Positions 5,017 through 25,297 are shown, numbered from the stretch's first letter. The stretch is DNA of 64,000 bases from Macrostomum lignano (GCA_002269645.1 NIVC01000733.1:1-64000); one strand, 5' to 3'. The notes: generated by a model not told the origin, from the sequence alone. Translations and numbers: made by a program.

Positions 5017-5572
5017 GTATGATCATAGCTATTGGTTTTACTCGGTAGTTCACGCACTTCACGCTCGCACTCGTAATATAGTTTTATGCTTATTTCTCTT
5101 AGATAAGAAGGTGGATAGATCTAAAGATAGTTACCGCGAATTTAAAATAGTTTTACATGTATACGTACAAAAACACCGCTTTTAAGGCTTTGAACTTTCC
5201 GTAACAATGTCCACCAAGCTTGTGTGGTTTTTAATCCGATTCTTCTTATTTTTCTTCCTAGATTCGTCTCCTAAATCCAATGGCATCACATTAATTTCGG
5301 ATTATTCAGTGTTCGAGTGCTGTTGATTGCGACAGTAAAAAAAATTTGTCTGGCTCTCTGACCCTCTTGGTAATCTCTAAATTTGACAAGAGCAAATCTA
5401 ATAATTTGTTATTAGAAATGAGAGCATTTCTCTAAGCACTACGATCGTAGCATAGAACTCAATTTTAAGTACTCGTAATCGACCATTTCCTGAAAAATCT
5501 CAGCACTTGAGACTGTCTAAGTGCTAATAATTAATTCGTGCTAAGTACTTTGAGCTTAATTCTAAATTGCAG
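5017..5572 (+). other. Predicted 5'-UTR intron(s) of the SecA-like gene, with a possible internal UTR exon at 5262-5334
   Basis: Donor CAG|GTATGA at 5017. Strong acceptor TTCTTATTTTTCTTCCTAG ending 5261. Donor ACA|GTAAAA at 5335. Acceptor TTAATTCTAAATTGCAG ending 5572, one base before the ATG at 5574. Confidence 0.5.
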
Positions 5573-5573
5573 A

Positions 5574-8500: not shown

Positions 8501-11500
8501 CCGCGGCTCACGAGGCTTTGATTCAATAATCGTGGATGAAGTTGACTCTCTGCTGCTGGACCAAGGTGTGCAGCTGACATATCTGGCTCAGGACGCAGGT
8601 GACATGAAAATGCTGGATCCAATTTTCGCTACTATCTTTAGAGCCACTATGGGCTGCCACGTTCTCAACACAGCGCACGGAGGTGAGATGGTGGCAGAGC
8701 AACAAATGACTTTTCTCTACCTCATAAAAGAGTTCGTCTCGTCGGATGAAGAGTTCAGCACTTTGGTCGAGCAACTTGATCTCAAACAGTTAATTAGTTC
8801 AGAGGAGAAACAGAGCTTCTTGGCTCAAAATGCCGAACCAGTGGATTTGTCAAACTTTGATATTAAAAGGACGATTCAGGTTCTTGAAGTTTCTGGAGAA
8901 GTTTTGCAAAATTTTCCATCGTATACAATTTATGCATTTAGAAATGCTGAAATCGAACCAGTGCGGCTTTGCCAAGATAGCTCATTGGATCTTTTAGTCC
9001 AAGATGGTGGAGTCTGCAATTTGCTTTTTGAAAATATCGATGACTTCAAAACACGAAAGAAGGAAGATATCTGGTCGAGAATAGACTACAGTACAACAAT
9101 ACTAGACCCGAAAGACGACACCAAAAAGAAACATGAAGAGGCCCAGCTGCCCATTCCATCGCATTTAAAGCAGTTCATAGATGACATGCTGGATGTCTGG
9201 ATCAACAGTGCCCTCACTGCAGGAGCTCTGCAACCCGGTAGAGACTACCTGCTTCAGGGTGGGGACGCTGTTCCAGTAGACTACAAGCACACAGGAGTGG
9301 TGCAGGAGAACATGAGATGGAGCGATGGGCTGCAGCAGTTTCTGCAGTTAAAACACAGCCTGCAAATGCGGCCTCTAGGATTGGAAACAAACTTCCTGTC
9401 AAACTTGGCCTTCTTCCGTCGATATGGCAAATCCATGTTCGGTGTGTCTGGAACTCTCGGAGAAGAGCATGAGAAAAAGTTCATGCGGGAAACTTACAAA
9501 GTGCAACTGAACTACATTCCTCCGTACAGGGAGCGCCGGCTTGTGGAGAACCCGGGCATTGTGGCAGAAACCAAGTCAGAGTGCATCACGAAAATTTGCC
9601 AACTAGTTACACAGGAGAGAAATCGGCCCAGCTTGATCGTGTGCGAGGATATCAACAGTGCCGACCTCATTTTCGAAGAGGTGGCTCGCCGTTGTCAAGG
9701 AGTCAAGACAAAAAAGTACGTCAAGAATGAGGACACAAAAGATGAACTTCAGGTGGGTCCCGGTGATGTTATTGTGGCCACGAATCTGGCAGGCAGGGGC
9801 ACGGATGTGAAAGTGAGTGACGACGCGGAGACAGCGGGAGGTCTACACGTTCTCGTCACATTCCTGCCCCTGAATCAGCGCGTTGAGGAGCAAGTGTTCG
9901 GCCGCAGTGGTCGCAAGGGCCAGCGGGGTTCAGCGACTTTGCTGCTAAGCAGAGAGGGCCTCAGTGCCTGCTTTTCAGACTGTGACTCTGTCGAAGAAAT
10001 GAAGCAGGTGAGACGAGAGGCCAGCTTGCAGGAACTGAAGAATCATGAGGAGTTCGCGCTGCCGGAAGTTGAGTTCAAGGAGAATCTTTTCAAGTGTATC
10101 AGTCATTTGCTATCGGAGTATTATCATCAGATAAAGAAACCTCCCAGCACTGGTACAGAGCTAGAAAAGCGTTGGTCAGAGACGGACCTAAAATTAAAAA
10201 TGGATCATTTAAAAGAGATTTGGGGCATGCATCTCAAAAAAACACTCTGTCACATTACTGATTTCAGTATAGAGAGAACAGCTCAGTGCATTGGAGAAGT
10301 TGAGAAAATGTTCCAGGAAGCAAAATCTAATGTCGAATCCGAGTGTTCATTGAGTCCTTTTCAGGCACTGAAGTTCGCAGAGAAAAGTGTAAGGCACGAA
10401 GATTTCGAACGAGCCATTGATCTTTACACAAAAGCTATAAATATGAACAGCTCATGGTCGTCTATCGCGTACTACAACAGAGCATACGCAAAAATAATGA
10501 AAGGCAACTGTGATATCAGAGAAGTGATGGATGACTTGGAAGATGCAAAAGCTCGGATTGCAGAAACCTGGCTGGCCCATGCCACGTGGACGGAGCTGTA
10601 CTCTGGCGCAAGAATCCAGCAGGAAAATGCAAGCGATAATGACTGTGAGGAGGAGGCTAAGAAGGAAACACCCAAAGACCAAGCGAATAAACAAGTTAAG
10701 GAAGAAGCCAGCCAAGATGTTCGAAGTGAAACTGCAAACCCTCAGTTCCGTCAATGCATGGCTCGAATAAGGATAATCAGCAATTATAAAACCCAAATAG
10801 AAAAATGCCTGGAAAAGCTGGAAGAGCACAGAAGAGCTGGTGATGAAATCATTGCTGTCAGCACTTGCATTAAGGAGATTGAGAAGGAACCAGACAGCAT
10901 TACACTTGACGAGCTCAAGTCTCTGTACCATCTGGGTCATGTAAGATTTTTTGATGTACAAAAGAAGCCTTCGTATGCGTTAGCAATTTTTGTGGCAATT
11001 TTCGGTGCCTTTGAGATTGCGCTTGGCACTGTGCTGTGTCTTGTTGGCGTGGAGAATGTTGGAATTCATTTTATCAATGAGGGCATTGGTGATATAATGG
11101 CAGGTTTCGTGGGGATGATTCAGGGTGATTTTGATCTAAAATCCTGGCTAAAAAATAAAGCCAAGAATATTGGTGTCAGCCTACTGACTTTTGGATTTGG
11201 AAAAGTCGTCAGCTATCTAAAATCTTCGCAGAAATTCGAAGCTGTTGCGCAAAACGTTAATGCAGCTGGGAGTAAATTCTACACGAAAACCGCGGCAGTA
11301 CTGAACAAAGTGACTGGACAAAAAGCTGTTAAGTTTATTAAGAACATAATGAGCAATCCAATTGTACAGAAAGTGACCGATTACGCGATAAGTGCAGCTC
11401 AAAGGAAACTGCTTGATAAGTTAATTGAAAAGTTAAAGCAAGGCGTCCAAGACGACGTTAAAGAGAAGTGTTCCTCTGAGGCTGAAAGTGGAAAACTTCA

Positions 11501-14500
11501 TGACATTGTTCTCCGACTGACTGCTCCTCTCTGCTTAGTAAAGGACCAGGAGACGAGTAAAATCGATATACATGATTTTTCCACTCTAACTCATTCTCAA
11601 ACCAATAATATTTTACAGGCTCTTACCGCTATAGCACACGAAGCAACAGATGAATTAATGTCTGATGTAGAAAATACGGCCAAATTAATCGAAGCAATAA
11701 GGTCACGATTGGCCGTTCTCAAAGACGAGTTTGCAGAACTCTTCAAGGGTATTCTGTCTTTCGTAAGACTGGCTTCGGTGGCAGTGGACTCGGCAGCAAT
11801 AGCAAAGCATTCTCAAACATTACACAGCCTAGTTGGCAGTACTGTCGAGTGCATGGACAAACGATTGCTCACCAGAGAATGGAAAATAAAATTTGACCAA
11901 ACCATTGACATCCGAAGCGAAAAGCTGCAGAGAAAAGAATGCATCAAACCACTCTGTGAAGCAATTCGAAAAGTGCTGGAGCAGCGCATCATTGAATGCG
12001 TCATTGTAATACTGGAAGAGCACATCCGTAAAAACCTAGATGGCATTGTGGAAAACAGCATTGCACAAGCAAAAAAGTTCGTTGGAAAAACATTTAAAAC
12101 CGCACATAAAGAAAATATATCTAACAAAAACATACCATCCATCAAAAATAAAAATATTGAAAAATCCGAAAAACCTGGAACCAAGAAATTCCTAAAGAAA
12201 ACTAAACTCACTGCTACAGACTCCGGTGTGGAGCTAACTAATGCAGACAAAAAACTAGCGGTCAAGGCTGGCGACTCTGGAGTGAGTGTGGAAACAGCAC
12301 AAAGACATGGCTCTCGGCGTGTCTCACGGATCGGACGGTTCTACAGAAGTGGCCGCGAGCAAGGGCGACAGCAAACTAGCGGTCAAGGCTGGCGACTCTG
12401 GAGTGAGTGTGGCCGCTCAGCACAAAGACATGGCTCTCGGCGTGTCTCACGGATCGGACGGTTCTACAGAAGTGGCCGCGAGCAAGGGCGACAGCAAACT
12501 AGCGGTCAAGGCTGGCGACTCTGGAGTGAGTGTGGCCGCTCAGCACAAAGACATGGCTCTCGGCGTGTCTCACGGATCGGACGGTTCTACAGAAGTGGCC
12601 GCGAGCAAGGGCGACAGCAAACTAGCGGTCAAGGCTGGCGACTCTGGAGTGAGTGTGGCCGCTCAGCACAAAGACATGGCTCTCGGCGTGTCTCACGGAT
12701 CGGACGGTTCTACAGAAGTGGCCGCGAGCAAGGGCGACAGCAAACTAGCGGTCAAGGCTGGCGACTCTGGAGTGAGTGTGGCCGCTCAGCACAAAGACAT
12801 GGCTCTCGGCGTGTCTCACGGATCGGACGGTTCTACAGAAGTGGCCGCGAGCAAGGGCGACAGCAAACTAGCGGTCAAGGCTGGCGACTCTGGAGTGAGT
12901 GTGGCCGCTCAGCACAAAGACATGGCTCTCGGCGTGTCTCACGGATCGGACGGTTCTACAGAAGTGGCCGCGAGCAAGGGCGACAGCAAACTAGCGGTCA
13001 AGGCTGGCGACTCTGGAGTGAGTGTGGCCGCTCAGCACAAAGACATGGCTCTCGGCGTGTCTCACGGATCGGACGGTTCTACAGAAGTGGCCGCGAGCAA
13101 GGGCGACAGCAAACTAGCGGTCAAGGCTGGCGACTCTGGAGTGAGTGTGGCCGCTCAGCACAAAGACATGGCTCTCGGCGTGTCTCACGGATCGGACGGT
13201 TCTACAGAAGTGGCCGCGAGCAAGGGCGACAGCAAACTAGCGGTCAAGGCTGGCGACTCTGGAGTGAGTGTGGCCGCTCAGCACAAAGACATGGCTCTCG
13301 GCGTGTCTCACGGATCGGACGGTTCTACAGAAGTGGCCGCGAGCAAGGGCGACAGCAAACTAGCGGTCAAGGCTGGCGACTCTGGAGTGAGTGTGGCCGC
13401 TCAGCACAAAGACATGGCTCTCGGCGTGTCTCACGGATCGGACGGTTCTACAGAAGTGGCCGCGAGCAAGGGCGACAGCAAACTAGCGGTCAAGGCTGGC
13501 GACTCTGGAGTGAGTGTGGCCGCTCAGCACAAAGACATGGCTCTCGGCGTGTCTCACGGATCGGACGGTTCTACAGAAGTGGCCGCGAGCAAGGGCGACA
13601 GCAAACTAGCGGTCAAGGCTGGCGACTCTGGAGTGAGTGTGGCCGCTCAGCACAAAGACATGGCTCTCGGCGTGTCTCACGGATCGGACGGTTCTACAGA
13701 AGTGGCCGCGAGCAAGGGCGACAGCAAACTAGCGGTCAAGGCTGGCGACTCTGGAGTGAGTGTGGCCGCTCAGCACAAAGACATGGCTCTCGGCGTGTCT
13801 CACGGATCGGACGGTTCTACAGAAGTGGCCGCGAGCAAGGGCGACAGCAAACTAGCGGTCAAGGCTGGCGACTCTGGAGTGAGTGTGGCCGCTCAGCACA
13901 AAGACATGGCTCTCGGCGTGTCTCACGGATCGGACGGTTCTACAGAAGTGGCCGCGAGCAAGGGCGACAGCAAACTAGCGGTCAAGGCTGGCGACTCTGG
14001 AGTGAGTGTGGCCGCTCAGCACAAAGACATGGCTCTCGGCGTGTCTCACGGATCGGACGGTTCTACAGAAGTGGCCGCGAGCAAGGGCGACAGCAAACTA
14101 GCGGTCAAGGCTGGCGACTCTGGAGTGAGTGTGGCCGCTCAGCACAAAGACATGGCTCTCGGCGTGTCTCACGGATCGGACGGTTCTACAGAAGTGGCCG
14201 CGAGCAAGGGCGACAGCAAACTAGCGGTCAAGGCTGGCGACTCTGGAGTGAGTGTGGCCGCTCAGCACAAAGACATGGCTCTCGGCGTGTCTCACGGATC
14301 GGACGGTTCTACAGAAGTGGCCGCGAGCAAGGGCGACAGCAAACTAGCGGTCAAGGCTGGCGACTCTGGAGTGAGTGTGGCCGCTCAGCACAAAGACATG
14401 GCTCTCGGCGTGTCTCACGGATCGGACGGTTCTACAGAAGTGGCCGCGAGCAAGGGCGACAGCAAACTAGCGGTCAAGGCTGGCGACTCTGGAGTGAGTG

Positions 14501-17500
14501 TGGCCGCTCAGCACAAAGACATGGCTCTCGGCGTGTCTCACGGATCGGACGGTTCTACAGAAGTGGCCGCGAGCAAGGGCGACAGCAAACTAGCGGTCAA
14601 GGCTGGCGACTCTGGAGTGAGTGTGGCCGCTCAGCACAAAGACATGGCTCTCGGCGTGTCTCACGGATCGGACGGTTCTACAGAAGTGGCCGCGAGCAAG
14701 GGCGACAGCAAACTAGCGGTCAAGGCTGGCGACTCTGGAGTGAGTGTGGCCGCTCAGCACAAAGACATGGCTCTCGGCGTGTCTCACGGATCGGACGGTT
14801 CTACAGAAGTGGCCGCGAGCAAGGGCGACAGCAAACTAGCGGTCAAGGCTGGCGACTCTGGAGTGAGTGTGGCCGCTCAGCACAAAGACATGGCTCTCGG
14901 CGTGTCTCACGGATCGGACGGTTCTACAGAAGTGGCCGCGAGCAAGGGCGACAGCAAACTAGCGGTCAAGGCTGGCGACTCTGGAGTGAGTGTGGCCGCT
15001 CAGCACAAAGACATGGCTCTCGGCGTGTCTCACGGATCGGACGGTTCTACAGAAGTGGCCGCGAGCAAGGGCGACAGCAAACTAGCGGTCAAGGCTGGCG
15101 ACTCTGGAGTGAGTGTGGCCGCTCAGCACAAAGACATGGCTCTCGGCGTGTCTCACGGATCGGACGGTTCTACAGAAGTGGCCGCGAGCAAGGGCGACAG
15201 CAAACTAGCGGTCAAGGCTGGCGACTCTGGAGTGAGTGTGGCCGCTCAGCACAAAGACATGGCTCTCGGCGTGTCTCACGGATCGGACGGTTCTACAGAA
15301 GTGGCCGCGAGCAAGGGCGACAGCAAACTAGCGGTCAAGGCTGGCGACTCTGGAGTGAGTGTGGCCGCTCAGCACAAAGACATGGCTCTCGGCGTGTCTC
15401 ACGGATCGGACGGTTCTACAGAAGTGGCCGCGAGCAAGGGCGACAGCAAACTAGCGGTCAAGGCTGGCGACTCTGGAGTGAGTGTGGCCGCTCAGCACAA
15501 AGACATGGCTCTCGGCGTGTCTCACGGATCGGACGGTTCTACAGAAGTGGCCGCGAGCAAGGGCGACAGCAAACTAGCGGTCAAGGCTGGCGACTCTGGA
15601 GTGAGTGTGGCCGCTCAGCACAAAGACATGGCTCTCGGCGTGTCTCACGGATCGGACGGTTCTACAGAAGTGGCCGCGAGCAAGGGCGACAGCAAACTAG
15701 CGGTCAAGGCTGGCGACTCTGGAGTGAGTGTGGCCGCTCAGCACAAAGACATGGCTCTCGGCGTGTCTCACGGATCGGACGGTTCTACAGAAGTGGCCGC
15801 GAGCAAGGGCGACAGCAAACTAGCGGTCAAGGCTGGCGACTCTGGAGTGAGTGTGGCCGCTCAGCACAAAGACATGGCTCTCGGCGTGTCTCACGGATCG
15901 GACGGTTCTACAGAAGTGGCCGCGAGCAAGGGCGACAGCAAACTAGCGGTCAAGGCTGGCGACTCTGGAGTGAGTGTGGCCGCTCAGCACAAAGACATGG
16001 CTCTCGGCGTGTCTCACGGATCGGACGGTTCTACAGAAGTGGCCGCGAGCAAGGGCGACAGCAAACTAGCGGTCAAGGCTGGCGACTCTGGAGTGAGTGT
16101 GGCCGCTCAGCACAAAGACATGGCTCTCGGCGTGTCTCACGGATCGGACGGTTCTACAGAAGTGGCCGCGAGCAAGGGCGACAGCAAACTAGCGGTCAAG
16201 GCTGGCGACTCTGGAGTGAGTGTGGCCGCTCAGCACAAAGACATGGCTCTCGGCGTGTCTCACGGATCGGACGGTTCTACAGAAGTGGCCGCGAGCAAGG
16301 GCGACAGCAAACTAGCGGTCAAGGCTGGCGACTCTGGAGTGAGTGTGGCCGCTCAGCACAAAGACATGGCTCTCGGCGTGTCTCACGGATCGGACGGTTC
16401 TACAGAAGTGGCCGCGAGCAAGGGCGACAGCAAACTAGCGGTCAAGGCTGGCGACTCTGGAGTGAGTGTGGCCGCTCAGCACAAAGACATGGCTCTCGGC
16501 GTGTCTCACGGATCGGACGGTTCTACAGAAGTGGCCGCGAGCAAGGGCGACAGCAAACTAGCGGTCAAGGCTGGCGACTCTGGAGTGAGTGTGGCCGCTC
16601 AGCACAAAGACATGGCTCTCGGCGTGTCTCACGGATCGGACGGTTCTACAGAAGTGGCCGCGAGCAAGGGCGACAGCAAACTAGCGGTCAAGGCTGGCGA
16701 CTCTGGAGTGAGTGTGGCCGCTCAGCACAAAGACATGGCTCTCGGCGTGTCTCACGGATCGGACGGTTCTACAGAAGTGGCCGCGAGCAAGGGCGACAGC
16801 AAACTAGCGGTCAAGGCTGGCGACTCTGGAGTGAGTGTGGCCGCTCAGCACAAAGACATGGCTCTCGGCGTGTCTCACGGATCGGACGGTTCTACAGAAG
16901 TGGCCGCGAGCAAGGGCGACAGCAAACTAGCGGTCAAGGCTGGCGACTCTGGAGTGAGTGTGGCCGCTCAGCACAAAGACATGGCTCTCGGCGTGTCTCA
17001 CGGATCGGACGGTTCTACAGAAGTGGCCGCGAGCAAGGGCGACAGCAAACTAGCGGTCAAGGCTGGCGACTCTGGAGTGAGTGTGGCCGCTCAGCACAAA
17101 GACATGGCTCTCGGCGTGTCTCACGGATCGGACGGTTCTACAGAAGTGGCCGCGAGCAAGGGCGACAGCAAACTAGCGGTCAAGGCTGGCGACTCTGGAG
17201 TGAGTGTGGCCGCTCAGCACAAAGACATGGCTCTCGGCGTGTCTCACGGATCGGACGGTTCTACAGAAGTGGCCGCGAGCAAGGGCGACAGCAAACTAGC
17301 GGTCAAGGCTGGCGACTCTGGAGTGAGTGTGGCCGCTCAGCACAAAGACATGGCTCTCGGCGTGTCTCACGGATCGGACGGTTCTACAGAAGTGGCCGCG
17401 AGCAAGGGCGACAGCAAACTAGCGGTCAAGGCTGGCGACTCTGGAGTGAGTGTGGCCGCTCAGCACAAAGACATGGCTCTCGGCGTGTCTCACGGATCGG

Positions 17501-20500
17501 ACGGTTCTACAGAAGTGGCCGCGAGCAAGGGCGACAGCAAACTAGCGGTCAAGGCTGGCGACTCTGGAGTGAGTGTGGCCGCTCAGCACAAAGACATGGC
17601 TCTCGGCGTGTCTCACGGATCGGACGGTTCTACAGAAGTGGCCGCGAGCAAGGGCGACAGCAAACTAGCGGTCAAGGCTGGCGACTCTGGAGTGAGTGTG
17701 GCCGCTCAGCACAAAGACATGGCTCTCGGCGTGTCTCACGGATCGGACGGTTCTACAGAAGTGGCCGCGAGCAAGGGCGACAGCAAACTAGCGGTCAAGG
17801 CTGGCGACTCTGGAGTGAGTGTGGCCGCTCAGCACAAAGACATGGCTCTCGGCGTGTCTCACGGATCGGACGGTTCTACAGAAGTGGCCGCGAGCAAGGG
17901 CGACAGCAAACTAGCGGTCAAGGCTGGCGACTCTGGAGTGAGTGTGGCCGCTCAGCACAAAGACATGGCTCTCGGCGTGTCTCACGGATCGGACGGTTCT
18001 ACAGAAGTGGCCGCGAGCAAGGGCGACAGCAAACTAGCGGTCAAGGCTGGCGACTCTGGAGTGAGTGTGGCCGCTCAGCACAAAGACATGGCTCTCGGCG
18101 TGTCTCACGGATCGGACGGTTCTACAGAAGTGGCCGCGAGCAAGGGCGACAGCAAACTAGCGGTCAAGGCTGGCGACTCTGGAGTGAGTGTGGCCGCTCA
18201 GCACAAAGACATGGCTCTCGGCGTGTCTCACGGATCGGACGGTTCTACAGAAGTGGCCGCGAGCAAGGGCGACAGCAAACTAGCGGTCAAGGCTGGCGAC
18301 TCTGGAGTGAGTGTGGCCGCTCAGCACAAAGACATGGCTCTCGGCGTGTCTCACGGATCGGACGGTTCTACAGAAGTGGCCGCGAGCAAGGGCGACAGCA
18401 AACTAGCGGTCAAGGCTGGCGACTCTGGAGTGAGTGTGGCCGCTCAGCACAAAGACATGGCTCTCGGCGTGTCTCACGGATCGGACGGTTCTACAGAAGT
18501 GGCCGCGAGCAAGGGCGACAGCAAACTAGCGGTCAAGGCTGGCGACTCTGGAGTGAGTGTGGCCGCTCAGCACAAAGACATGGCTCTGGGCGTGTCTCTC
18601 GGCGTGTCTCACGGATCGGACGGTTCTACAGAAGTGGCCGCGAGCAAGGGCGACAGCAAACTAGCGGTCAAGGCTGGCGACTCTGGAGTGAGTGTGGCCG
18701 CTCAGCACAAAGACATGGCTCTCGGCGTGTCTCACGGATCGGACGGTTCTACAGAAGTGGCCGCGAGCAAGGGCGACAGCAAACTAGCGGTCAAGGCTGG
18801 CGACTCTGGAGTGAGTGTGGCCGCTCAGCACAAAGACATGGCTCTCGGCGTGTCTCACGGATCGGACGGTTCTACAGAAGTGGCCGCGAGCAAGGGCGAC
18901 AGCAAACTAGCGGTCAAGGCTGGCGACTCTGGAGTGAGTGTGGCCGCTCAGCACAAAGACATGGCTCTCGGCGTGTCTCACGGATCGGACGGTTCTACAG
19001 AAGTGGCCGCGAGCAAGGGCGACAGCAAACTAGCGGTCAAGGCTGGCGACTCTGGAGTGAGTGTGGCCGCTCAGCACAAAGACATGGCTCTCGGCGTGTC
19101 TCACGGATCGGACGGTTCTACAGAAGTGGCCGCGAGCAAGGGCGACAGCAAACTAGCGGTCAAGGCTGGCGACTCTGGAGTGAGTGTGGCCGCTCAGCAC
19201 AAAGACATGGCTCTCGGCGTGTCTCACGGATCGGACGGTTCTACAGAAGTGGCCGCGAGCAAGGGCGACAGCAAACTAGCGGTCAAGGCTGGCGACTCTG
19301 GAGTGAGTGTGGCCGCTCAGCACAAAGACATGGCTCTCGGCGTGTCTCACGGATCGGACGGTTCTACAGAAGTGGCCGCGAGCAAGGGCGACAGCAAACT
19401 AGCGGTCAAGGCTGGCGACTCTGGAGTGAGTGTGGCCGCTCAGCACAAAGACATGGCTCTCGGCGTGTCTCACGGATCGGACGGTTCTACAGAAGTGGCC
19501 GCGAGCAAGGGCGACAGCAAACTAGCGGTCAAGGCTGGCGACTCTGGAGTGAGTGTGGCCGCTCAGCACAAAGACATGGCTCTCGGCGTGTCTCACGGAT
19601 CGGACGGTTCTACAGAAGTGGCCGCGAGCAAGGGCGACAGCAAACTAGCGGTCAAGGCTGGCGACTCTGGAGTGAGTGTGGCCGCTCAGCACAAAGACAT
19701 GGCTCTCGGCGTGTCTCACGGATCGGACGGTTCTACAGAAGTGGCCGCGAGCAAGGGCGACAGCAAACTAGCGGTCAAGGCTGGCGACTCTGGAGTGAGT
19801 GTGGCCGCTCAGCACAAAGACATGGCTCTCGGCGTGTCTCACGGATCGGACGGTTCTACAGAAGTGGCCGCGAGCAAGGGCGACAGCAAACTAGCGGTCA
19901 AGGCTGGCGACTCTGGAGTGAGTGTGGCCGCTCAGCACAAAGACATGGCTCTCGGCGTGTCTCACGGATCGGACGGTTCTACAGAAGTGGCCGCGAGCAA
20001 GGGCGACAGCAAACTAGCGGTCAAGGCTGGCGACTCTGGAGTGAGTGTGGCCGCTCAGCACAAAGACATGGCTCTCGGCGTGTCTCACGGATCGGACGGT
20101 TCTACAGAAGTGGCCGCGAGCAAGGGCGACAGCAAACTAGCGGTCAAGGCTGGCGACTCTGGAGTGAGTGTGGCCGCTCAGCACAAAGACATGGCTCTCG
20201 GCGTGTCTCACGGATCGGACGGTTCTACAGAAGTAGCCGCGAGCAAGGGCGACAGCAAACTAGCGGTCAAGGCTGGCGACTCTGGAGTGAGTGTGGCCGC
20301 TCAGCACAAAGACATGGCTCTCGGCGTGTCTCACGGATCGGACGGTTCTACAGAAGTAGCCGCGAGCAAGGGCGACAGCAAACTAGCGGTCAAGGCTGGC
20401 GACTCTGGAGTGAGTGTGGCCGCTCAGCACAAAGACATGGCTCTCGGCGTGTCTCACGGATCGGACGGTTCTACAGAAGTAGCCGCGAGCAAGGGCGACA

Positions 20501-22868
20501 GCAAACTAGCGGTCAAGGCTGGCGACTCTGGAGTGAGTGTGGCCGCTCAGCACAAAGACATGGCTCTCGGCGTGTCTCACGGATCGGACGGTTCTACAGA
20601 AGTGGCCGCGAGCAAGGGCGACAGCAAACTAGCGGTCAAGGCTGGCGACTCTGGAGTGAGTGTGGCCGCTCAGCACAAAGACATGGCTCTCGGCGTGTCT
20701 CACGGATCGGACGGTTCTACAGAAGTGGCCGCGAGCAAGGGCGACAGCAAACTAGCGGTCAAGGCTGGCGACTCTGGAGTGAGTGTGGCCGCTCAGCACA
20801 AAGACATGGCTCTCGGCGTGTCTCACGGATCGGACGGTTCTACAGAAGTAGCCGCGAGCAAGGGCGACAGCAAACTAGCGGTCAAGGCTGGCGACTCTGG
20901 AGTGAGTGTGGCCGCTCAGCACAAAGACATGGCTCTCGGCGTGTCTCACGGATCGGACGGTTCTACAGAAGTAGCCGCGAGCAAGGGCGACAGCAAACTA
21001 GCGGTCAAGGCTGGCGACTCTGGAGTGAGTGTGGCCGCTCAGCACAAAGACATGGCTCTCGGCGTGTCTCACGGATCGGACGGTTCTACAGAAGTAGCCG
21101 CGAGCAAGGGCGACAGCAAACTAGCGGTCAAGGCTGGCGACTCTGGAGTGAGTGTGGCCGCTCAGCACAAAGACATGGCTCTCGGCGTGTCTCACGGATC
21201 GGACGGTTCTACAGAAGTGGCCGCGAGCAAGGGCGACAGCAAACTAGCGGTCAAGGCTGGCGACTCTGGAGTGAGTGTGGCCGCTCAGCACAAAGACATG
21301 GCTCTCGGCGTGTCTCACGGATCGGACGGTTCTACAGAAGTAGCCGCGAGCAAGGGCGACAGCAAACTAGCGGTCAAGGCTGGCGACTCTGGAGTGAGTG
21401 TGGCCGCTCAGCACAAAGACATGGCTCTCGGCGTGTCTCACGGATCGGACGGTTCTACAGAAGTAGCCGCGAGCAAGGGCGACAGCAAACTAGCGGTCAA
21501 GGCTGGCGACTCTGGAGTGAGTGTGGCCGCTCAGCACAAAGACATGGCTCTCGGCGTGTCTCACGGATCGGACGGTTCTACAGAAGTAGCCGCGAGCAAG
21601 GGCGACAGCAAACTAGCGGTCAAGGCTGGCGACTCTGGAGTGAGTGTGGCCGCTCAGCACAAAGACATGGCTCTCGGCGTGTCTCACGGATCGGACGGTT
21701 CTACAGAAGTGGCCGCGAGCAAGGGCGACAGCAAACTAGCGGTCAAGGCTGGCGACTCTGGAGTGAGTGTGGCCGCTCAGCACAAAGACATGGCTCTCGG
21801 CGTGTCTCACGGATCGGACGGTTCTACAGAAGTGGCCGCGAGCAAGGGCGACAGCAAACTAGCGGTCAAGGCTGGCGACTCTGGAGTGAGTGTGGCCGCT
21901 CAGCACAAAGACATGGCTCTCGGCGTGTCTCACGGATCGGACGGTTCTACAGAAGTGGCCGCGAGCAAGGGCGACAGCAAACTAGCGGTCAAGGCTGGCG
22001 ACTCTGGAGTGAGTGTGGCCGCTCAGCACAAAGACATGGCTCTCGGCGTGTCTCACGGATCGGACGGTTCTACAGAAGTGGCCGCGAGCAAGGGCGACAG
22101 CAAACTAGCGGTCAAGGCTGGCGACTCTGGAGTGAGTGTGGCCGCTCAGCACAAAGACATGGCTCTCGGCGTGTCTCACGGATCGGACGGTTCTACAGAA
22201 GTGGCCGCGAGCAAGGGCGACAGCAAACTAGCGGTCAAGGCTGGCGACTCTGGAGTGAGTGTGGCCGCTCAGCACAAAGACATGGCTCTCGGCGTGTCTC
22301 ACGGATCGGACGGTTCTACAGAAGTAGCCGCGAGCAAGGGCGACAGCAAACTAGCGGTCAAGGCTGGCGACTCTGGAGTGAGTGTGGCCGCTCAGCACAA
22401 AGACATGGCTCTCGGCGTGTCTCACGGATCGGACGGTTCTACAGAAGTAGCCGCGAGCAAGGGCGACAGCAAACTAGCGGTCAAGGCTGGCGACTCTGGA
22501 GTGAGTGTGGCCGCTCAGCACAAAGACATGGCTCTCGGCGTGTCTCACGGATCGGACGGTTCTACAGAAGTAGCCGCGAGCAAGGGCGACAGCAAACTAG
22601 CGGTCAAGGCTGGCGACTCTGGAGTGAGTGTGGCCGCTCAGCACAAAGACATGGCTCTCGGCGTGTCTCACGGATCGGACGGTTCTACAGAAGTAGCCGC
22701 GAGCAAGGGCGACAGCAAACTAGCGGTCAAGGCTGGCGACTCTGGAGTGAGTGTGGCCGCTCAGCACAAAGACATGGCTCTCGGCGTGTCTCACGGATCG
22801 GACGGTTCTACAGAAGTGGCCGCGAGCAAGGGCGACAGCAAACTAGCGGTCAAGGCTGGCGACTCTGA
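5574..22868 (+). CDS. Giant eukaryotic SecA-like DEAD ATPase with coiled-coil N-terminus, TPR-like segment, hydrophobic hairpin and tandem-repeat tail (5764 aa as assembled; ~2240 aa unique part ends ~12290)
   Basis: SecA motifs occur in order: QILTGEGKS (Walker A, cf. TGEGKT), YGTVSSFAGDTLR, IIVDEVDSLLLD, RWSDGLQQFL, GVSGTL, VATNLAGRGTD, GGLHV and EQVFGRSGRKGQRGS (cf. QLRGRSGRQGDxGS). TPR-like AIDLYTKAINMNSSWSSIAYYNRAYA at ~10410-10490. Hydrophobic segment YALAIFVAIFGAFEIALGTVLCLVGV at ~10975-11055. ATG 5574 (MGNTGS) is preferred over the track's GTG 5538 because an acceptor ends at 5572. Confidence 0.9.
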   Translation: MGNTGSKLSNNTDEHWSVAAEYKVVGWSAGDGIIHVDPWNSTHYDFKGFPVNIYFKHKTHSLSDTISDSDMKSWCNGIRNKDWKLHSPSEGIIHLEYNGGYVANYKYETRSMFEARMHREREQRMERERRGQEQRMERERRGQEQRMERERRGQEQRMERERREKEQRMERERREKEQRMERERREKEQRMERERREKVQRMQGALQQLKQGDREQSLFDQRRAEQQMARQSAMQTENIQKWKSLNAERDRALVNFNHKTKDFSRRCEATRQERSAKHEASKRQTEKDRAEHFARLQKQARDRTESEQLSLADEQEQANAIRKQRHDEFHRQKLKVTSETSEKFSSLNQEAQETRARLRAQFEERKSTFQEQMKRKKEEMQQQSSEMQDRLQLQKNQLEIGKEELHREMAEREAEIARKIEEQRRHRAEKQRESENLKKTEQFKRQILIELERERAKAMRRQFKSVSYSIQHVRGKSAKGYSNPAVSEASEVMLRDQLEENVEDALTKFLGSLSGAIEDDSNQELSVAANVKTISAKDALDLFKRVWKSEGHPFGKQPTSSQLSLLQLLDEKFAQQCLDAANKVFREICFPSLELDLVSYGLLVFVLHSEKSQDIKHEEDFSALRQQLSDTRIALAHMRKLTSETAYNELSPVTERLLQLLVVAEDVVRLWPIQQDPAAGLKRLRVVLATMLRHAGVSQYLDEKSNTECVVELITSMQHWDPVSMLKLMEFIHTSCTEPDQVREFVKMMVLSRGDPRSLPSPREAITETYIASLKKDQASQKTLDQLLDELKKTGQFDEGQLSELADVVRKVFTYFDSSGFDKALQKLKIWKRGKESPLHKILIDLCKAVLKCKGYLPRHTQVFSTAALLNAFKNKTSGQVLQILTGEGKSCIVAMSAVGLVRLGQKSVDVVAPSEVLAARDCKEWKDFYKICDVRVDCNIEHENPKKCYESCIVYGTVSSFAGDTLRHEFQFKDIRGSRGFDSIIVDEVDSLLLDQGVQLTYLAQDAGDMKMLDPIFATIFRATMGCHVLNTAHGGEMVAEQQMTFLYLIKEFVSSDEEFSTLVEQLDLKQLISSEEKQSFLAQNAEPVDLSNFDIKRTIQVLEVSGEVLQNFPSYTIYAFRNAEIEPVRLCQDSSLDLLVQDGGVCNLLFENIDDFKTRKKEDIWSRIDYSTTILDPKDDTKKKHEEAQLPIPSHLKQFIDDMLDVWINSALTAGALQPGRDYLLQGGDAVPVDYKHTGVVQENMRWSDGLQQFLQLKHSLQMRPLGLETNFLSNLAFFRRYGKSMFGVSGTLGEEHEKKFMRETYKVQLNYIPPYRERRLVENPGIVAETKSECITKICQLVTQERNRPSLIVCEDINSADLIFEEVARRCQGVKTKKYVKNEDTKDELQVGPGDVIVATNLAGRGTDVKVSDDAETAGGLHVLVTFLPLNQRVEEQVFGRSGRKGQRGSATLLLSREGLSACFSDCDSVEEMKQVRREASLQELKNHEEFALPEVEFKENLFKCISHLLSEYYHQIKKPPSTGTELEKRWSETDLKLKMDHLKEIWGMHLKKTLCHITDFSIERTAQCIGEVEKMFQEAKSNVESECSLSPFQALKFAEKSVRHEDFERAIDLYTKAINMNSSWSSIAYYNRAYAKIMKGNCDIREVMDDLEDAKARIAETWLAHATWTELYSGARIQQENASDNDCEEEAKKETPKDQANKQVKEEASQDVRSETANPQFRQCMARIRIISNYKTQIEKCLEKLEEHRRAGDEIIAVSTCIKEIEKEPDSITLDELKSLYHLGHVRFFDVQKKPSYALAIFVAIFGAFEIALGTVLCLVGVENVGIHFINEGIGDIMAGFVGMIQGDFDLKSWLKNKAKNIGVSLLTFGFGKVVSYLKSSQKFEAVAQNVNAAGSKFYTKTAAVLNKVTGQKAVKFIKNIMSNPIVQKVTDYAISAAQRKLLDKLIEKLKQGVQDDVKEKCSSEAESGKLHDIVLRLTAPLCLVKDQETSKIDIHDFSTLTHSQTNNILQALTAIAHEATDELMSDVENTAKLIEAIRSRLAVLKDEFAELFKGILSFVRLASVAVDSAAIAKHSQTLHSLVGSTVECMDKRLLTREWKIKFDQTIDIRSEKLQRKECIKPLCEAIRKVLEQRIIECVIVILEEHIRKNLDGIVENSIAQAKKFVGKTFKTAHKENISNKNIPSIKNKNIEKSEKPGTKKFLKKTKLTATDSGVELTNADKKLAVKAGDSGVSVETAQRHGSRRVSRIGRFYRSGREQGRQQTSGQGWRLWSECGRSAQRHGSRRVSRIGRFYRSGREQGRQQTSGQGWRLWSECGRSAQRHGSRRVSRIGRFYRSGREQGRQQTSGQGWRLWSECGRSAQRHGSRRVSRIGRFYRSGREQGRQQTSGQGWRLWSECGRSAQRHGSRRVSRIGRFYRSGREQGRQQTSGQGWRLWSECGRSAQRHGSRRVSRIGRFYRSGREQGRQQTSGQGWRLWSECGRSAQRHGSRRVSRIGRFYRSGREQGRQQTSGQGWRLWSECGRSAQRHGSRRVSRIGRFYRSGREQGRQQTSGQGWRLWSECGRSAQRHGSRRVSRIGRFYRSGREQGRQQTSGQGWRLWSECGRSAQRHGSRRVSRIGRFYRSGREQGRQQTSGQGWRLWSECGRSAQRHGSRRVSRIGRFYRSGREQGRQQTSGQGWRLWSECGRSAQRHGSRRVSRIGRFYRSGREQGRQQTSGQGWRLWSECGRSAQRHGSRRVSRIGRFYRSGREQGRQQTSGQGWRLWSECGRSAQRHGSRRVSRIGRFYRSGREQGRQQTSGQGWRLWSECGRSAQRHGSRRVSRIGRFYRSGREQGRQQTSGQGWRLWSECGRSAQRHGSRRVSRIGRFYRSGREQGRQQTSGQGWRLWSECGRSAQRHGSRRVSRIGRFYRSGREQGRQQTSGQGWRLWSECGRSAQRHGSRRVSRIGRFYRSGREQGRQQTSGQGWRLWSECGRSAQRHGSRRVSRIGRFYRSGREQGRQQTSGQGWRLWSECGRSAQRHGSRRVSRIGRFYRSGREQGRQQTSGQGWRLWSECGRSAQRHGSRRVSRIGRFYRSGREQGRQQTSGQGWRLWSECGRSAQRHGSRRVSRIGRFYRSGREQGRQQTSGQGWRLWSECGRSAQRHGSRRVSRIGRFYRSGREQGRQQTSGQGWRLWSECGRSAQRHGSRRVSRIGRFYRSGREQGRQQTSGQGWRLWSECGRSAQRHGSRRVSRIGRFYRSGREQGRQQTSGQGWRLWSECGRSAQRHGSRRVSRIGRFYRSGREQGRQQTSGQGWRLWSECGRSAQRHGSRRVSRIGRFYRSGREQGRQQTSGQGWRLWSECGRSAQRHGSRRVSRIGRFYRSGREQGRQQTSGQGWRLWSECGRSAQRHGSRRVSRIGRFYRSGREQGRQQTSGQGWRLWSECGRSAQRHGSRRVSRIGRFYRSGREQGRQQTSGQGWRLWSECGRSAQRHGSRRVSRIGRFYRSGREQGRQQTSGQGWRLWSECGRSAQRHGSRRVSRIGRFYRSGREQGRQQTSGQGWRLWSECGRSAQRHGSRRVSRIGRFYRSGREQGRQQTSGQGWRLWSECGRSAQRHGSRRVSRIGRFYRSGREQGRQQTSGQGWRLWSECGRSAQRHGSRRVSRIGRFYRSGREQGRQQTSGQGWRLWSECGRSAQRHGSRRVSRIGRFYRSGREQGRQQTSGQGWRLWSECGRSAQRHGSRRVSRIGRFYRSGREQGRQQTSGQGWRLWSECGRSAQRHGSRRVSRIGRFYRSGREQGRQQTSGQGWRLWSECGRSAQRHGSRRVSRIGRFYRSGREQGRQQTSGQGWRLWSECGRSAQRHGSRRVSRIGRFYRSGREQGRQQTSGQGWRLWSECGRSAQRHGSRRVSRIGRFYRSGREQGRQQTSGQGWRLWSECGRSAQRHGSRRVSRIGRFYRSGREQGRQQTSGQGWRLWSECGRSAQRHGSRRVSRIGRFYRSGREQGRQQTSGQGWRLWSECGRSAQRHGSRRVSRIGRFYRSGREQGRQQTSGQGWRLWSECGRSAQRHGSRRVSRIGRFYRSGREQGRQQTSGQGWRLWSECGRSAQRHGSRRVSRIGRFYRSGREQGRQQTSGQGWRLWSECGRSAQRHGSRRVSRIGRFYRSGREQGRQQTSGQGWRLWSECGRSAQRHGSRRVSRIGRFYRSGREQGRQQTSGQGWRLWSECGRSAQRHGSRRVSRIGRFYRSGREQGRQQTSGQGWRLWSECGRSAQRHGSRRVSRIGRFYRSGREQGRQQTSGQGWRLWSECGRSAQRHGSRRVSRIGRFYRSGREQGRQQTSGQGWRLWSECGRSAQRHGSGRVSRRVSRIGRFYRSGREQGRQQTSGQGWRLWSECGRSAQRHGSRRVSRIGRFYRSGREQGRQQTSGQGWRLWSECGRSAQRHGSRRVSRIGRFYRSGREQGRQQTSGQGWRLWSECGRSAQRHGSRRVSRIGRFYRSGREQGRQQTSGQGWRLWSECGRSAQRHGSRRVSRIGRFYRSGREQGRQQTSGQGWRLWSECGRSAQRHGSRRVSRIGRFYRSGREQGRQQTSGQGWRLWSECGRSAQRHGSRRVSRIGRFYRSGREQGRQQTSGQGWRLWSECGRSAQRHGSRRVSRIGRFYRSGREQGRQQTSGQGWRLWSECGRSAQRHGSRRVSRIGRFYRSGREQGRQQTSGQGWRLWSECGRSAQRHGSRRVSRIGRFYRSGREQGRQQTSGQGWRLWSECGRSAQRHGSRRVSRIGRFYRSGREQGRQQTSGQGWRLWSECGRSAQRHGSRRVSRIGRFYRSGREQGRQQTSGQGWRLWSECGRSAQRHGSRRVSRIGRFYRSGREQGRQQTSGQGWRLWSECGRSAQRHGSRRVSRIGRFYRSSREQGRQQTSGQGWRLWSECGRSAQRHGSRRVSRIGRFYRSSREQGRQQTSGQGWRLWSECGRSAQRHGSRRVSRIGRFYRSSREQGRQQTSGQGWRLWSECGRSAQRHGSRRVSRIGRFYRSGREQGRQQTSGQGWRLWSECGRSAQRHGSRRVSRIGRFYRSGREQGRQQTSGQGWRLWSECGRSAQRHGSRRVSRIGRFYRSSREQGRQQTSGQGWRLWSECGRSAQRHGSRRVSRIGRFYRSSREQGRQQTSGQGWRLWSECGRSAQRHGSRRVSRIGRFYRSSREQGRQQTSGQGWRLWSECGRSAQRHGSRRVSRIGRFYRSGREQGRQQTSGQGWRLWSECGRSAQRHGSRRVSRIGRFYRSSREQGRQQTSGQGWRLWSECGRSAQRHGSRRVSRIGRFYRSSREQGRQQTSGQGWRLWSECGRSAQRHGSRRVSRIGRFYRSSREQGRQQTSGQGWRLWSECGRSAQRHGSRRVSRIGRFYRSGREQGRQQTSGQGWRLWSECGRSAQRHGSRRVSRIGRFYRSGREQGRQQTSGQGWRLWSECGRSAQRHGSRRVSRIGRFYRSGREQGRQQTSGQGWRLWSECGRSAQRHGSRRVSRIGRFYRSGREQGRQQTSGQGWRLWSECGRSAQRHGSRRVSRIGRFYRSGREQGRQQTSGQGWRLWSECGRSAQRHGSRRVSRIGRFYRSSREQGRQQTSGQGWRLWSECGRSAQRHGSRRVSRIGRFYRSSREQGRQQTSGQGWRLWSECGRSAQRHGSRRVSRIGRFYRSSREQGRQQTSGQGWRLWSECGRSAQRHGSRRVSRIGRFYRSSREQGRQQTSGQGWRLWSECGRSAQRHGSRRVSRIGRFYRSGREQGRQQTSGQGWRL
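5937..6179 (+). repeat. Coding 33-bp tandem repeat, 7 copies plus a partial (EQRMERERRGQ x3, EQRMERERREK x4)
   Basis: Direct reading of GAGCAGAGAATGGAGAGAGAGCGCAGAGGACAA-type units, in frame. Confidence 0.95.
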
Positions 22869-23971
22869 GTGAGTGTGGCCGCTCAGCACAAAGACATGGC
22901 TCTCGGCGTGTCTCACGGATCGGACGGTTCTACAGAAGTGGCCGCGAGCAAGGGCGACAGCAAACTAGCGGTCAAGGCTGGCGACTCTGGAGTGAGTGTG
23001 GCCGCTCAGCACAAAGACATGGCTCTCGGCGTGTCTCACGGATCGGACGGTTCTACAGAAGTGGCCGCGAGCAAGGGCGACAGCAAACTAGCGGTCAAGG
23101 CTGGCGACTCTGGAGTGAGTGTGGCCGCTCAGCACAAAGACATGGCTCTCGGCGTGTCTCACGGATCGGACGGTTCTACAGAAGTAGCCGCGAGCAAGGG
23201 CGACAGCAAACTAGCGGTCAAGGCTGGCGACTCTGGAGTGAGTGTGGCCGCTCAGCACAAAGACATGGCTCTCGGCGTGTCTCACGGATCGGACGGTTCT
23301 ACAGAAGTGGCCGCGAGCAAGGGCGACAGCAAACTAGCGGTCAAGGCTGGCGACTCTGGAGTGAGTGTGGCCGCTCAGCACAAAGACATGGCTCTCGGCG
23401 TGTCTCACGGATCGGACGGTTCTACAGAAGTAGCCGCGAGCAAGGGCGACAGCAAACTAGCGGTCAAGGCTGGCGACTCTGGAGTGAGTGTGGCCGCTCA
23501 GCACAAAGACATGGCTCTCGGCGTGTCTCACGGATCGGACGGTTCTACAGAAGTAGCCGCGAGCAAGGGCGACAGCAAACTAGCGGTCAAGGCTGGCGAC
23601 TCTGGAGTGAGTGTGGCCGCTCAGCACAAAGACATGGCTCTCGGCGTGTCTCACGGATCGGACGGTTCTACAGAAGTGGCCGCGAGCAAGGGCGACAGCA
23701 AACTAGCGGTCAAGGCTGGCGACTCTGAGTGAGTGTGGCCGCTCAGCACAAAGACATGGCTCTCGGCGTGTCTCACGGATCGGACGGTTCTACAGAAGTG
23801 GCCGCGAGCAAGGGCGACAGCAAACTAGCGGTCAAGGCTGGCGACTCTGGAGTGAGTGTGGCCGCTCAGCACAAAGACATGGCTCTCGGCGTGTCTCACG
23901 GATCGGACGGTTCTACAGAAGTAGCCGCGAGCAAGGGCGACAGCAAACTAGCGGTCAAGGCTGGCGACTCT
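12252..23971 (+). repeat. 123-bp tandem array, ~95 copies, almost invariant, open in two + frames
   Basis: The 123-nt period was verified (e.g. 12304 to 12427). The only deviations seen are a 2-nt-shorter first junction (12292-12294), a 12-bp duplication at 18586-18609, a recurrent G>A (first at 20235, 17 units) and 1-bp deletions at ~22867 and ~23727. Confidence 0.98.
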
Positions 23972-23977
23972 CTATAG
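12286..23977 (+). CDS. Alternative, probably ancestral, reading frame of the repeat tail: (KLAVKAGDSGVSVAAQHKDMALGVSHGSDGSTEVAASKGDS)n ending GDSL-stop; broken by two 1-bp deletions
   Basis: ORF track 12286-22872, 22869-23732 and 23729-23977. The SecA ORF itself reads KKLAVKAGDSGVSV before the junction. The array ends GAC TCT CTA TAG in this frame. Both substitutions (GTG>GTA, CTC>CTG) are synonymous only here. Confidence 0.6.
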
Positions 23978-25297
23978 CTAAGGACTACCATTTTGACGTG
24001 TAATGACGGTAGTATTTCGGCTAAACGATTTAATCGAAAAGGACATTTTTCAGTGTCGTCCTTTGACTTCTGTGTGGTTGAATACTTTTGCAGACTTCAG
24101 TCTAAGCGTTCGTTTGAAATGCAGTGTAGTAAAAAAGTGTTGAAATTAGTATTTATAGTTTCTAGTATAGCAAGTAAATCATTTAGGTCATTTTATCCAC
24201 CTACATGTACTTGTATCGTTTGAGTGAAAAACTTTTACAAGAATACAAGTACCCACTAAATTGATGCAACTTCGTTTAGGAGTTATTTGGCATTGATTTG
24301 GGGCTACTAGTTTTTATTTTATTTATAAAATAATATTAACTATTCGCATTGTAATCGTGTAATTCGTGGTTTTTCTATGGGTAAATTATGGATTTTCTAT
24401 GGGTAAATTACCTTTTGAAGGAATGCAGCGACAGGTACATGTCGCTAACTTTTTATGCTATCTGCTAATAACATTTTGAGCTAAAGCTTTCCCTAAATTG
24501 CCTGACGTCAAAGTATGCAAATGAGTAAGCTTAATGATCTATAGTTAGTGGAGCGAATAATTGTGAGCGAAAACAAGAACCCTGAGCCCTTTTCGGCTAA
24601 ATTTTAAAATTATTATGATCATTGTATTGTTGGACAAATTTTAGTGAAAGCACTTCTGCTCATTTTGCATGTACATATATGTGAATGTACGACTCATATC
24701 GCACATATCCAGAGAATTTGGAATATTGCTAATGGTGAGTAATTCAGTTGAAGATAATGAACTGCTTTGCCTATTTCTTTACTATTTCTGGTTTAACATT
24801 GTTAATTTTTTAAATGGCTTTAAAATCATTTGATTTTAAACACACTACTACATGTATATGTTACTGTACCTTCGTAGCTTTTTTGTCGAACGTATATCGA
24901 ACGCACCAAAAGCCGAATTACAATCTTTATTTTATTTTAAGAGGAGTATATAGCTCGTATGTATTAAATAAGTTATCGGAAAAAGTCTGAGATATGATGT
25001 GAACAGCAAATTTACTGATGATTATGTACATAGCCGCTATAGGCTACACTCGGCGACTTAAAATAAAGGCTCATTCCCATTGCAATCAAATTCAACCAAC
25101 CAAATAGTACGATCAATGTACAAATGAACCAAATTTGATGTACAAGTCGCGTTATCAAACGAAATTGGACCAGATTAGATGGTGTTTTGAATGAACGAAG
25201 TTAGGGCCGCGCTGGACACTCCTGTGTGAGTTTGGCCTGCTGTGCATATGGCTGCCGTACGTATCCGAGCGCTTGCATGTGTGCCTGGTCGGGGGGT

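Follow-up and report, generated by a model that had tools for sequence, protein, structure and literature searches.

The 64,000-nucleotide stretch of Macrostomum lignano DNA analysed here (NIVC01000733.1:1-64000, assembly GCA_002269645.1), called the window, carries a gene for a giant SecA-like ATPase whose open reading frame (ORF) runs into a long tandem array of a 123-bp unit. The unit can be read in two open plus-strand phases, named A and B, and the assembled sequence moves the ORF from phase A into phase B within the first unit. The reading that we favour, with slightly better than even confidence, is that the array is a coding minisatellite of the SecA-like ATPase gene, and that this copy has a real, frameshifted and decaying tail in a redundant paralog. 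The features of the gene and the array are listed below, numbered from the first letter of the window.

5574-12251 (+): unique, intronless part of the gene, 2226 codons, beginning MGNTGSK; giant SecA-like ATPase
5927-6179 (+): small coding repeat, 33 bp x 7.7 copies, with the E/R-rich unit REQRMERERR(G/E)(Q/K)E
8013-9956 (+): SecA-like DEAD motor; Pfam SecA_DEAD at aa 814-1299 and P-loop_SecA at aa 1418-1461
8226-8246, 8526-8549 and 9777-9806 (+): motor motifs LTGEGKS, IIVDEVDS and ATNLAGRGTD, respectively
10968-11075 (+): hydrophobic Gly-rich segment, aa 1799-1834, the only strongly hydrophobic stretch in a Kyte-Doolittle scan
12252-12372 (+): array unit 1, 121 bp; AAA (12292-12294) in place of CCGCT, net -2
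12373-22839 (+): units 2-86; phase A is window frame 0 (ORF 12286-22872), and the upstream ORF (frame 2) reads phase B
18523-18657 (+): unit 52, 135 bp; in-frame 12-bp duplication (LGVS repeated), which takes in C>G at 18588
20134-23944 (+): distal part of the array, with the 17 GTG>GTA units in a higher-order pattern
22840-22961 (+): unit 87, 122 bp; 1-bp deletion (GG>G; CTGGAG>CTGAG) giving TGA at 22866-22868
23700-23821 (+): unit 94, 122 bp; 1-bp deletion identical to that of unit 87, giving TGA at 23730-23732
23945-23977 (+): terminal partial unit, 33 bp, ending GGC GAC TCT CTA TAG (...AVKAGDSL-TAG); native phase-A stop at 23975-23977, window frame 1

The 2226 unique codons of the gene contain no frameshift and no intron-like interruption. 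Their product passes the Pfam gathering scores for SecA_DEAD (PF07517, E=1.4e-23, 84.1 bits against a cut-off of 24.6) and P-loop_SecA (PF21090, E=3.6e-07, 30.5 bits against a cut-off of 27), and the GEGKS, DEVD and AGRGTD motifs are present, which places it among the SecA_DEAD-domain ATPases. The canonical SecA translocase domains PF01043 and PF07516 are absent from the 2226-residue protein at E<=0.01 in Pfam; both are present in the distant bacterial matches P0025 and P0026. The initial annotation had spoken of a SecA ORF and a translocase-like motor; the ORF is better taken as encoding a SecA-like motor. The motor is followed by a weak TPR-like stretch, and the C-terminal unique part is a Lys/Asn/Ile-rich helical tail. 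The hydrophobic Gly-rich segment is kept in fish and bacterial relatives, and would be expected to associate with a membrane.

The top database match is the M. lignano protein BOX15_Mlig033771g1 (92% identity), and the next ones are uncharacterised fish and newt proteins of 2000-3100 residues that are 27-30% identical across roughly half the length. The locus tag Mlig033771 turned up nothing in a literature search. The bacterial relative P0024 ends in WHH/colicin-DNase toxin domains. Judged from domain content, the SecA-like ATPase family looks like a cassette-swapping, conflict-type family; no relative outside Macrostomum carries this array tail among the database matches. The 33-bp coding repeat is present as one copy in the paralog protein P0001, which is an in-frame copy-number difference between the two copies, and the fish homologs also have long E/R-rich repeats at this place. 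The relatives P0003-P0005, P0009 and P0024 have the motor and the hydrophobic Gly-rich segment in common and differ in their C-terminal modules. The fish and newt relatives include a region with an NCLYHA (Cys-protease-like) motif.

Tandem Repeats Finder reported 12252-23971 as one tandem array with a period of 123 bp, 95.2 copies, 99% matches and a score of 23164. Anchoring on the unit start gave 96 units in 12252-23977, the final one being the 33-bp partial unit, and 74 of the 96 match the consensus exactly. Such an array is far beyond anything that chance would give. Seventeen units, every one within units 65-95, have GTG>GTA at unit position 102. The deletion units 87 and 94 lie seven units apart in a common three-unit context (a GTA unit, a consensus unit and the deletion unit), as expected where a block of variant units has been duplicated. 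The head-to-tail units of 123 bp (41 codons), their near-identity, the diverged edge units and the higher-order variant blocks are those of a coding minisatellite, i.e. a variable number tandem repeat (VNTR). A candidate for a degenerate extra unit just 5' of the array (KTKLTATDSGVELTNADK compared with KLAVKAGDSGVSVAAQHK) was not significant and was dropped, with a DNA score of 21 against 18 +/- 2.2 for shuffles and a protein score of 27 against 27 +/- 4.5.

In the consensus unit, phases A and B are open, and the third plus-strand phase (C) and all three minus-strand phases are closed. The phase-A unit has 41 residues (KLAVKAGDSGVSVAAQHKDMALGVSHGSDGSTEVAASKGDS), a net charge of -1, and no Arg, Cys, Phe, Trp or Tyr; the phase-B unit has 10 Arg and 2 Glu, with a net charge of +8. 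Peptides derived from the unit include AGDSGVSVAAQHK and DMALGVSHGSDGSTEVAASK for phase A, and QQTSGQGWR and LWSECGR for phase B. The SecA-like upstream ORF reaches unit 1 in phase A as KLAVKAGDSGVSV, entering it as ...TNADKKLAVKAGDSGVSV, and reads phase B after the -2 of this unit (...ETAQRHGSRRVSRIGRFYRSGREQGRQQTS...). The ORF as assembled extends from ATG 5574 to TGA 22866-22868 (5764 codons), where it stops because the 1-bp deletion of unit 87 creates the TGA. The long ORFs are 5538-22868 and 12286-22872, and neither frame is open over the whole array. A further phase-A ORF of 287 codons (22869-23732) is closed by the TGA of unit 94. The terminal GDSL* lies in window frame 1, and is thus discontinuous with both the upstream ORF in frame 2 and the long phase-A ORF in frame 0; a single frame from ATG 5574 to GDSL* (TAG 23975) requires three corrections of +2, +1 and +1.

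Most of what the initial annotation had described here was reproduced by the unit lengths, the translation and the composition counts, i.e. the array of about 95 copies, a unit without stops in two plus-strand frames and with the third closed, the entry of the upstream ORF in frame A, the AAA in place of CCGCT that moves the ORF into frame B, the 10 Arg and 2 Glu per frame-B unit, the near-neutral frame A without aromatic residues, Cys or Arg, and the final frame-A stop after GDSL. Its claim that two frames are open across the whole array failed on the 1-bp deletions in units 87 and 94, each of which makes a TGA. Restoration of phase A at the unit-1 junction during translation would require a +1 shift. 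Inspection of the junction, GTG GAA ACA GCA, revealed no known slippery site or recoding signal, and to our knowledge it matches no recoding motif. Splicing from the GTGAGT of unit 1 to a CAG|CAC in a later unit would remove the -2 and keep phase A, but would leave the 1-bp deletions, and was set aside.

A paralogous locus (L001), which holds the gene for the protein P0001, is found in NIVC01002610.1 of the assembly Mlig_3_7. Its flanks are as in the window, and it has a 57-58-unit array of the same 123-bp unit. The consensus units of the two arrays differ at unit positions 60 and 88, as array-specific fixed differences of a VNTR, and the most diverged unit is unit 1 in both arrays alike. At the position of the window's unit 1, L001 begins its array with a full-length unit in phase A (GCCGTTCAG); the alignment reads ...GTGTGGCCGTTCAGCAC... 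in L001 and ...GTGTGG--AAACAGCAC... in the window. The junction is intact in the paralog, without the -2, and the -2 junction is therefore specific to the window copy. The earlier suggestion that the first unit is a diverged copy was well founded, in that it is an edge unit with a frame-breaking lesion where L001 has a full-length unit. The tail ORF of L001 continues into the array in phase A, and the array also ends in phase A, with AVKAGESL-TAA. L001 has a -7 of its own in unique sequence, at L001 16030-16050 (about 11850-11870 in the window), some 130 codons before its array, and because of this frameshift the annotated P0001 ends ...NTRWTNYC. Each copy therefore has a different lesion uncoupling the motor and the array.

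The assembly of L001 was built from PacBio continuous long reads (CLR) with Canu and polished with Pilon, and indels within its array are not trustworthy. Seven units at L001 16441-23469 share one 2-bp deletion (unit positions 114-115), which is linked to 88G in most cases and is allelic with a GG>AA variant inside a 5-unit higher-order block; the deletion may be genuine, or it may reflect a systematic consensus error at a run of AAAA. One further unit has a 1-bp deletion, so that 8 of the 58 units shift the frame. The L001 indels sum to -15 (0 modulo 3); reading this sum as frame restoration was rejected, since such a sum has a chance probability of 1/3 and the stretches in between run into phase C, which is closed. 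Between the window and L001, dN/dS is 0.33 overall, 0.17-0.27 in the motor and 0.69 in the 139 tail codons adjoining the array. In this comparison, which spans 5574-24460, synonymous sites have diverged by about 0.22 at aa 1800-2090 and by about 0.06 in the SecA core; identity in the 3' flank is 97%. The mosaic divergence of the paralogs suggests that gene conversion has taken place between them.

A model of codon usage, with the unique sequence of both paralogs as its training set, gave +12.1 bits for phase A, -4.9 for phase B and -19.6 for phase C. G stands at codon position 1 in 23 of the 41 phase-A codons, matching the gene's own bias. Substitution variants over both arrays (n=12) are synonymous at 5 sites in phase A and at 2 in phase B. 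The non-synonymous variants are conservative in phase A (M/I, G/S, K/R, A/T and A/V) and radical in phase B (R>W, R>C, G>D and the nonsense change TGG>TAG); the TGG>TAG variant, which puts a stop into phase B, is found in L001. The initial annotation had named two substitutions as silent only in frame A; this is true of GTG>GTA (17 units), but the CTC>CTG at 18588 belongs to the 12-bp duplication of unit 52. Phase A is supported as the ancestral and native coding frame, as had been supposed, by the codon model, the variants, and the phase-A start and end of the L001 array.

The openness of phase B was compared with chance, by shuffling the codons of the phase-A unit or by randomising its synonymous codons with the peptide kept. 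The probability of at least one alternative open frame was 0.09 with codon shuffling and 0.11 with random synonymous codons; for phase B alone it was 0.04 and 0.02, respectively. A second open frame in a 41-codon unit is unremarkable and is not evidence of design, and amplification of such a unit passes the open frame on to the entire array. Dual coding implies a coding signature or constraint in both frames; phase B gave -4.9 bits, 2 of 12 synonymous variants and a mean predicted local distance difference test score (pLDDT) of 49. The other frame-breaking units, in the window and in L001, show no clean toggling between A and B, as they give stops or lead into the closed phase C. The proposal of a repeat-encoded dual-coding switch is therefore not supported: phase B lacks a coding signature, its openness is within chance, and the units do not toggle between A and B. 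We take the open phase B to be incidental to the repeat, and do not regard it as a second coding frame that has evolved.

AlphaFold2 models of six units, made without an alignment, had a mean pLDDT of 94.0 for phase A (all-beta) and 48.7 for phase B. The phase-A model has four strands per unit of about 8 residues each, and the unit is predicted to form four short β-strands with tight Gly/Asp/Ser turns, either WD40-blade-like or as a β-meander. With ten phase-A units as the query, an exhaustive HMMER search returned 558 proteins at E<=0.001, headed by highly repetitive cyanobacterial-type WD40 proteins. Among PDB sequences, phase A matches the Nostoc WD40 protein 2YMU best (E=1e-16) and designed WD40 repeats next; the phmmer value for P0028 (E=1e-40) is inflated by periodicity. 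The 41-residue blades align in register (QH/GH, GV/GV, SHGSDGST/FSPDGQT, AAS/ASAS and KL/KL), and the Trp of the WD40 blade is Ala/Val in the phase-A unit. None of 200 tandem arrays of shuffled units reached the observed score, the target having been picked after the search; against the same target, phase A scored 198 and phase B 24. These alignments point to a WD40-blade-like resemblance of the phase-A repeat, and the Macrostomum-specific repeat tail is possibly WD40-derived. The Pfam matches of phase A to BRX_N, Luciferase and Cadherin_2, and of phase B to Yae1_N and DUF6363, contained no individually significant stretch, and were rejected as repeat-inflated noise.

A real, frameshifted and decaying tail could have arisen as follows. 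The ancestral motor protein would have ended in a phase-A β-repeat domain encoded by the minisatellite. The array would expand, contract and homogenise through unequal crossing-over, by which the units are kept almost identical; unequal exchange is supported by the array-specific differences (positions 60 and 88), the diverged edge units and the higher-order variant blocks. The phase-A tail would then be severed from the motor by three small deletions, a net -2 (unit 1) and two of 1 bp (units 87 and 94). Should the sequence be correct and the gene expressed, 85 units would be translated in phase B and end at the TGA of unit 87, so that the predicted tail is an Arg-rich product of about 3500 residues up to the TGA of the second lesion. 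The giant polycationic tail that had been proposed could thus be made by the allele as assembled (5764 codons, from ATG 5574 to TGA 22866). The lesions look real from the sequence, given the complex change in unit 1 (a 5-to-3-bp replacement adjoining unique sequence), the intact 6.7 kb of unique sequence, the independent -7 of the paralog and the relaxed constraint on the tail. We infer that the lesions are real rather than assembly errors, that the phase-A repeat has a β fold, and that phase B is functionless.

Several observations weigh against this reading. On the assembly sequence, the three indels are indistinguishable from consensus errors, and the PacBio CLR and Pilon indels inside the L001 repeats are unreliable. 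The junction queries (the tail with three A units and three B units, and the tail with one unit of each) found, in a collection of 5.8 billion proteins, no predicted protein that crosses from the tail into the array or contains the repeat in either frame. The contrast of synonymous and non-synonymous variants comes from 12 sites only, and supports phase A without settling it; the openness of phase B alone (p about 0.02-0.04) is mildly unusual. Periodicity in both partners inflates the WD40 E-values, and the Pfam WD40 family (PF00400) had no match to phase A even at E<=10. AlphaFold2 gives confident β-solenoids for 41% of random perfect repeats (PMC11795689), and because of this over-confidence the pLDDT of 94 is downgraded to weak support; as such it is kept, because the phase-B control gave 49.

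The strongest rival is an artefact of assembly or consensus, with a true locus that is one phase-A ORF of about 96 units running to GDSL*; we consider it unlikely, though far from negligible. Arrays of identical units are beyond short-read polishing and near-identical repeats are where consensus and polishing fail, and the indels are concentrated in the arrays of the window and L001 (8 indels in the 58 units of the Canu and Pilon assembly Mlig_3_7), none being found in the 6.7 kb of unique coding sequence. The three corrections of +2, +1 and +1 would also restore the whole frame from ATG 5574 to TAG 23975. However, the unit-1 change (CCGCT/CCGTT>AAA) is complex and no simple homopolymer slip, and it makes a unique k-mer at the edge of the array, where polishing works. 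Moreover, the 1-bp deletion occurs twice in the same variant-unit pattern, which fits a duplicated real variant, and the paralog's -7 lies in unique sequence.

An array that is untranslated in every copy, either because the mRNA ends or is spliced before or inside it or because it is a GC-rich minisatellite merely adjoining the gene, is improbable; on that view its open frames would have no bearing. The G+C content of the array is 61%, compared with 42-47% in the gene, and the window and the genome are full of minisatellites. An AATAAA lies about 100 bp upstream of the array, and a donor-like GTGAGT and acceptor-like CAG motifs recur in every unit. The lesions uncouple the array from the motor ORF in both paralogs, and the tail has no counterpart in relatives outside Macrostomum. 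Nevertheless, no stop interrupts the tail ORF of either paralog as it passes into unit 1 in phase A, and both arrays end within two codons of a phase-A stop. The array further carries a phase-A coding signature, in the codon model, the G at the first codon position, the conservative variants and the in-frame 12-bp duplication, and the Mlig_3_7 annotation has a gene model inside the paralog array.

Functional frame switching, with the indel units as a contingency or dual-coding device that makes the tail β-repeat, polycationic or truncated, is scarcely credible: the openness of phase B, the recurrence of frame-shifting units (3/96 in the window and 8/58 in L001) and an L001 array that starts and ends in phase A with indels summing to -15 speak for it, whereas phase B has no coding signature, structure or conservation, an L001 variant places TAG in it, a succession of -2 units brings the reading of L001 into phase C, which is closed, the sum of 0 modulo 3 arises by chance in one case of three, and inspection of the junction showed no known slippery site or recoding signal. 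The broader claim, with real frame-breaking units and an expressed gene, is that the free-living flatworm naturally makes a SecA-like motor with a polycation of about 3500 residues and 24% Arg, or that it gains and loses indel-bearing units and so switches its tail among a WD40-like β-repeat, a polycation and a truncated form, as a eukaryotic contingency locus made of a coding minisatellite; this is very improbable as well.

The remainder of the window, 24000-64000, consists of nearly continuous minisatellite and microsatellite arrays, more than 25 in number, with periods of 4-61 bp. The long 'ORFs' in this region are repeat artefacts. This abundance of minisatellites fits the flatworm identity of the window, as does the tandem-repeat content of 15% reported for the M. 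lignano genome (PMC5730564). Downstream arrays in the window include the following.

31810-33190: 23 bp x 60
34612-36628: 28 bp x 71
51236-51556: 61-bp unit x 5.3 copies; each unit has the palindrome GTCACGTGAC (CACGTG core) between the arms ATTGCTATTGG ... CCAATAGCAAT of an internal inverted repeat
51988-53090: 17 bp x 66
56255-57451: 22 bp x 55

At L001, interstitial TTAGGG x 5.7, a telomere-type hexamer, is present at 24379-24412, about 900 bp 3' of the array.

If the lesions are real, the locus would be a natural and very large counterpart of the MUC1 VNTR frameshift: a single small indel would convert a neutral β-repeat of about 3500 residues to an Arg-rich polypeptide. Such an allele would be tolerated by a highly redundant genome, and would be useful for the study of the decay of coding minisatellites and of how the cell handles their products. 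Whatever the status of the lesions, the gene belongs to a family of giant SecA-like ATPases in animals that is uncharacterised and has toxin-type proteins of bacteria as relatives. In the flatworm members an extremely homogeneous WD40-like repeat has taken the place of the C-terminal module, an arrangement that recalls, by analogy, the NTPase-plus-repeat immune sensors. The locus is also a caution for annotation, as near-perfect coding arrays in long-read assemblies produce spurious giant ORFs in the wrong frame.

Comparison with known systems also showed some similarities. The phase-A model, with consecutive β-hairpins in an extended antiparallel sheet, resembles OspA and the engineered 'peptide self-assembly mimic' extensions. 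OspA-type structures were its best Foldseek matches (probability 1.00, E about 4e-4, TM 0.2-0.5); however, there is no sequence relationship to OspA, and the comparison is of a single-sequence AlphaFold2 model of a perfect repeat, for which over-confidence is known (PMC11795689). SecA-like ATPase domains occur in giant secreted or toxin-type bacterial proteins, as Kaur et al. 2021 (PMC8195603) mention, and likewise Zhang et al. 2012 (PMC3482391). The window gene shares with its giant toxin-type relatives the SecA_DEAD and P-loop_SecA core followed by the hydrophobic Gly-rich segment, and with the fish proteins the N-terminal MG start and the E/R-rich coiled-coil repeat. The C-terminal module varies among the relatives, being WHH/colicin-DNase in the bacterial P0024 and another module in fish; whereas the Macrostomum copies have the 41-residue repeat array where the enzymatic C-terminal module stands.

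The fungal and cyanobacterial STAND/NLR NTPases have WD40 repeats that are highly conserved internally, change in copy number and are hard to assemble (PMC4986451, PMC1805685, PMC12222747). Like HET-E, HET-D and NWD, and the Nostoc protein 2YMU, the protein described here combines an NTPase with a C-terminal array of 41-42-residue units, four-stranded by prediction in phase A, encoded by near-identical DNA copies, and phase A is in register with the WD40 blades at H, GV, DG-T, AS and KL. The motor, however, is of the SecA/DEAD-like kind instead of NACHT or NB-ARC; Trp and all other aromatic residues are absent from the unit, which has no Pfam WD40 match; and there are 96 units, compared with about 7-20. 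Moreover, the AlphaFold2 model is predicted to be an open meander resembling the single-layer sheet of OspA, unlike a WD40 propeller.

The closest precedent is, by analogy, the MUC1 VNTR frameshift. According to PMC5843638 and PMC12458345, the MUC1 frameshift alleles give a long aberrant repeat protein, escape standard sequencing or are mis-called by it, and need long reads. The MUC1 VNTR (ADTKD-MUC1) is likewise a G+C-rich coding minisatellite in which a small indel in one unit opens an alternative frame through the remaining units. The unit of the M. lignano array is 123 bp long, compared with 60 bp in MUC1, and is present in about 96 nearly identical copies; its native frame is a predicted β-repeat and not a mucin, and its host is a cytosolic-type SecA-like ATPase. 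What is new here remains an extreme example of a coding minisatellite with a frameshift allele.

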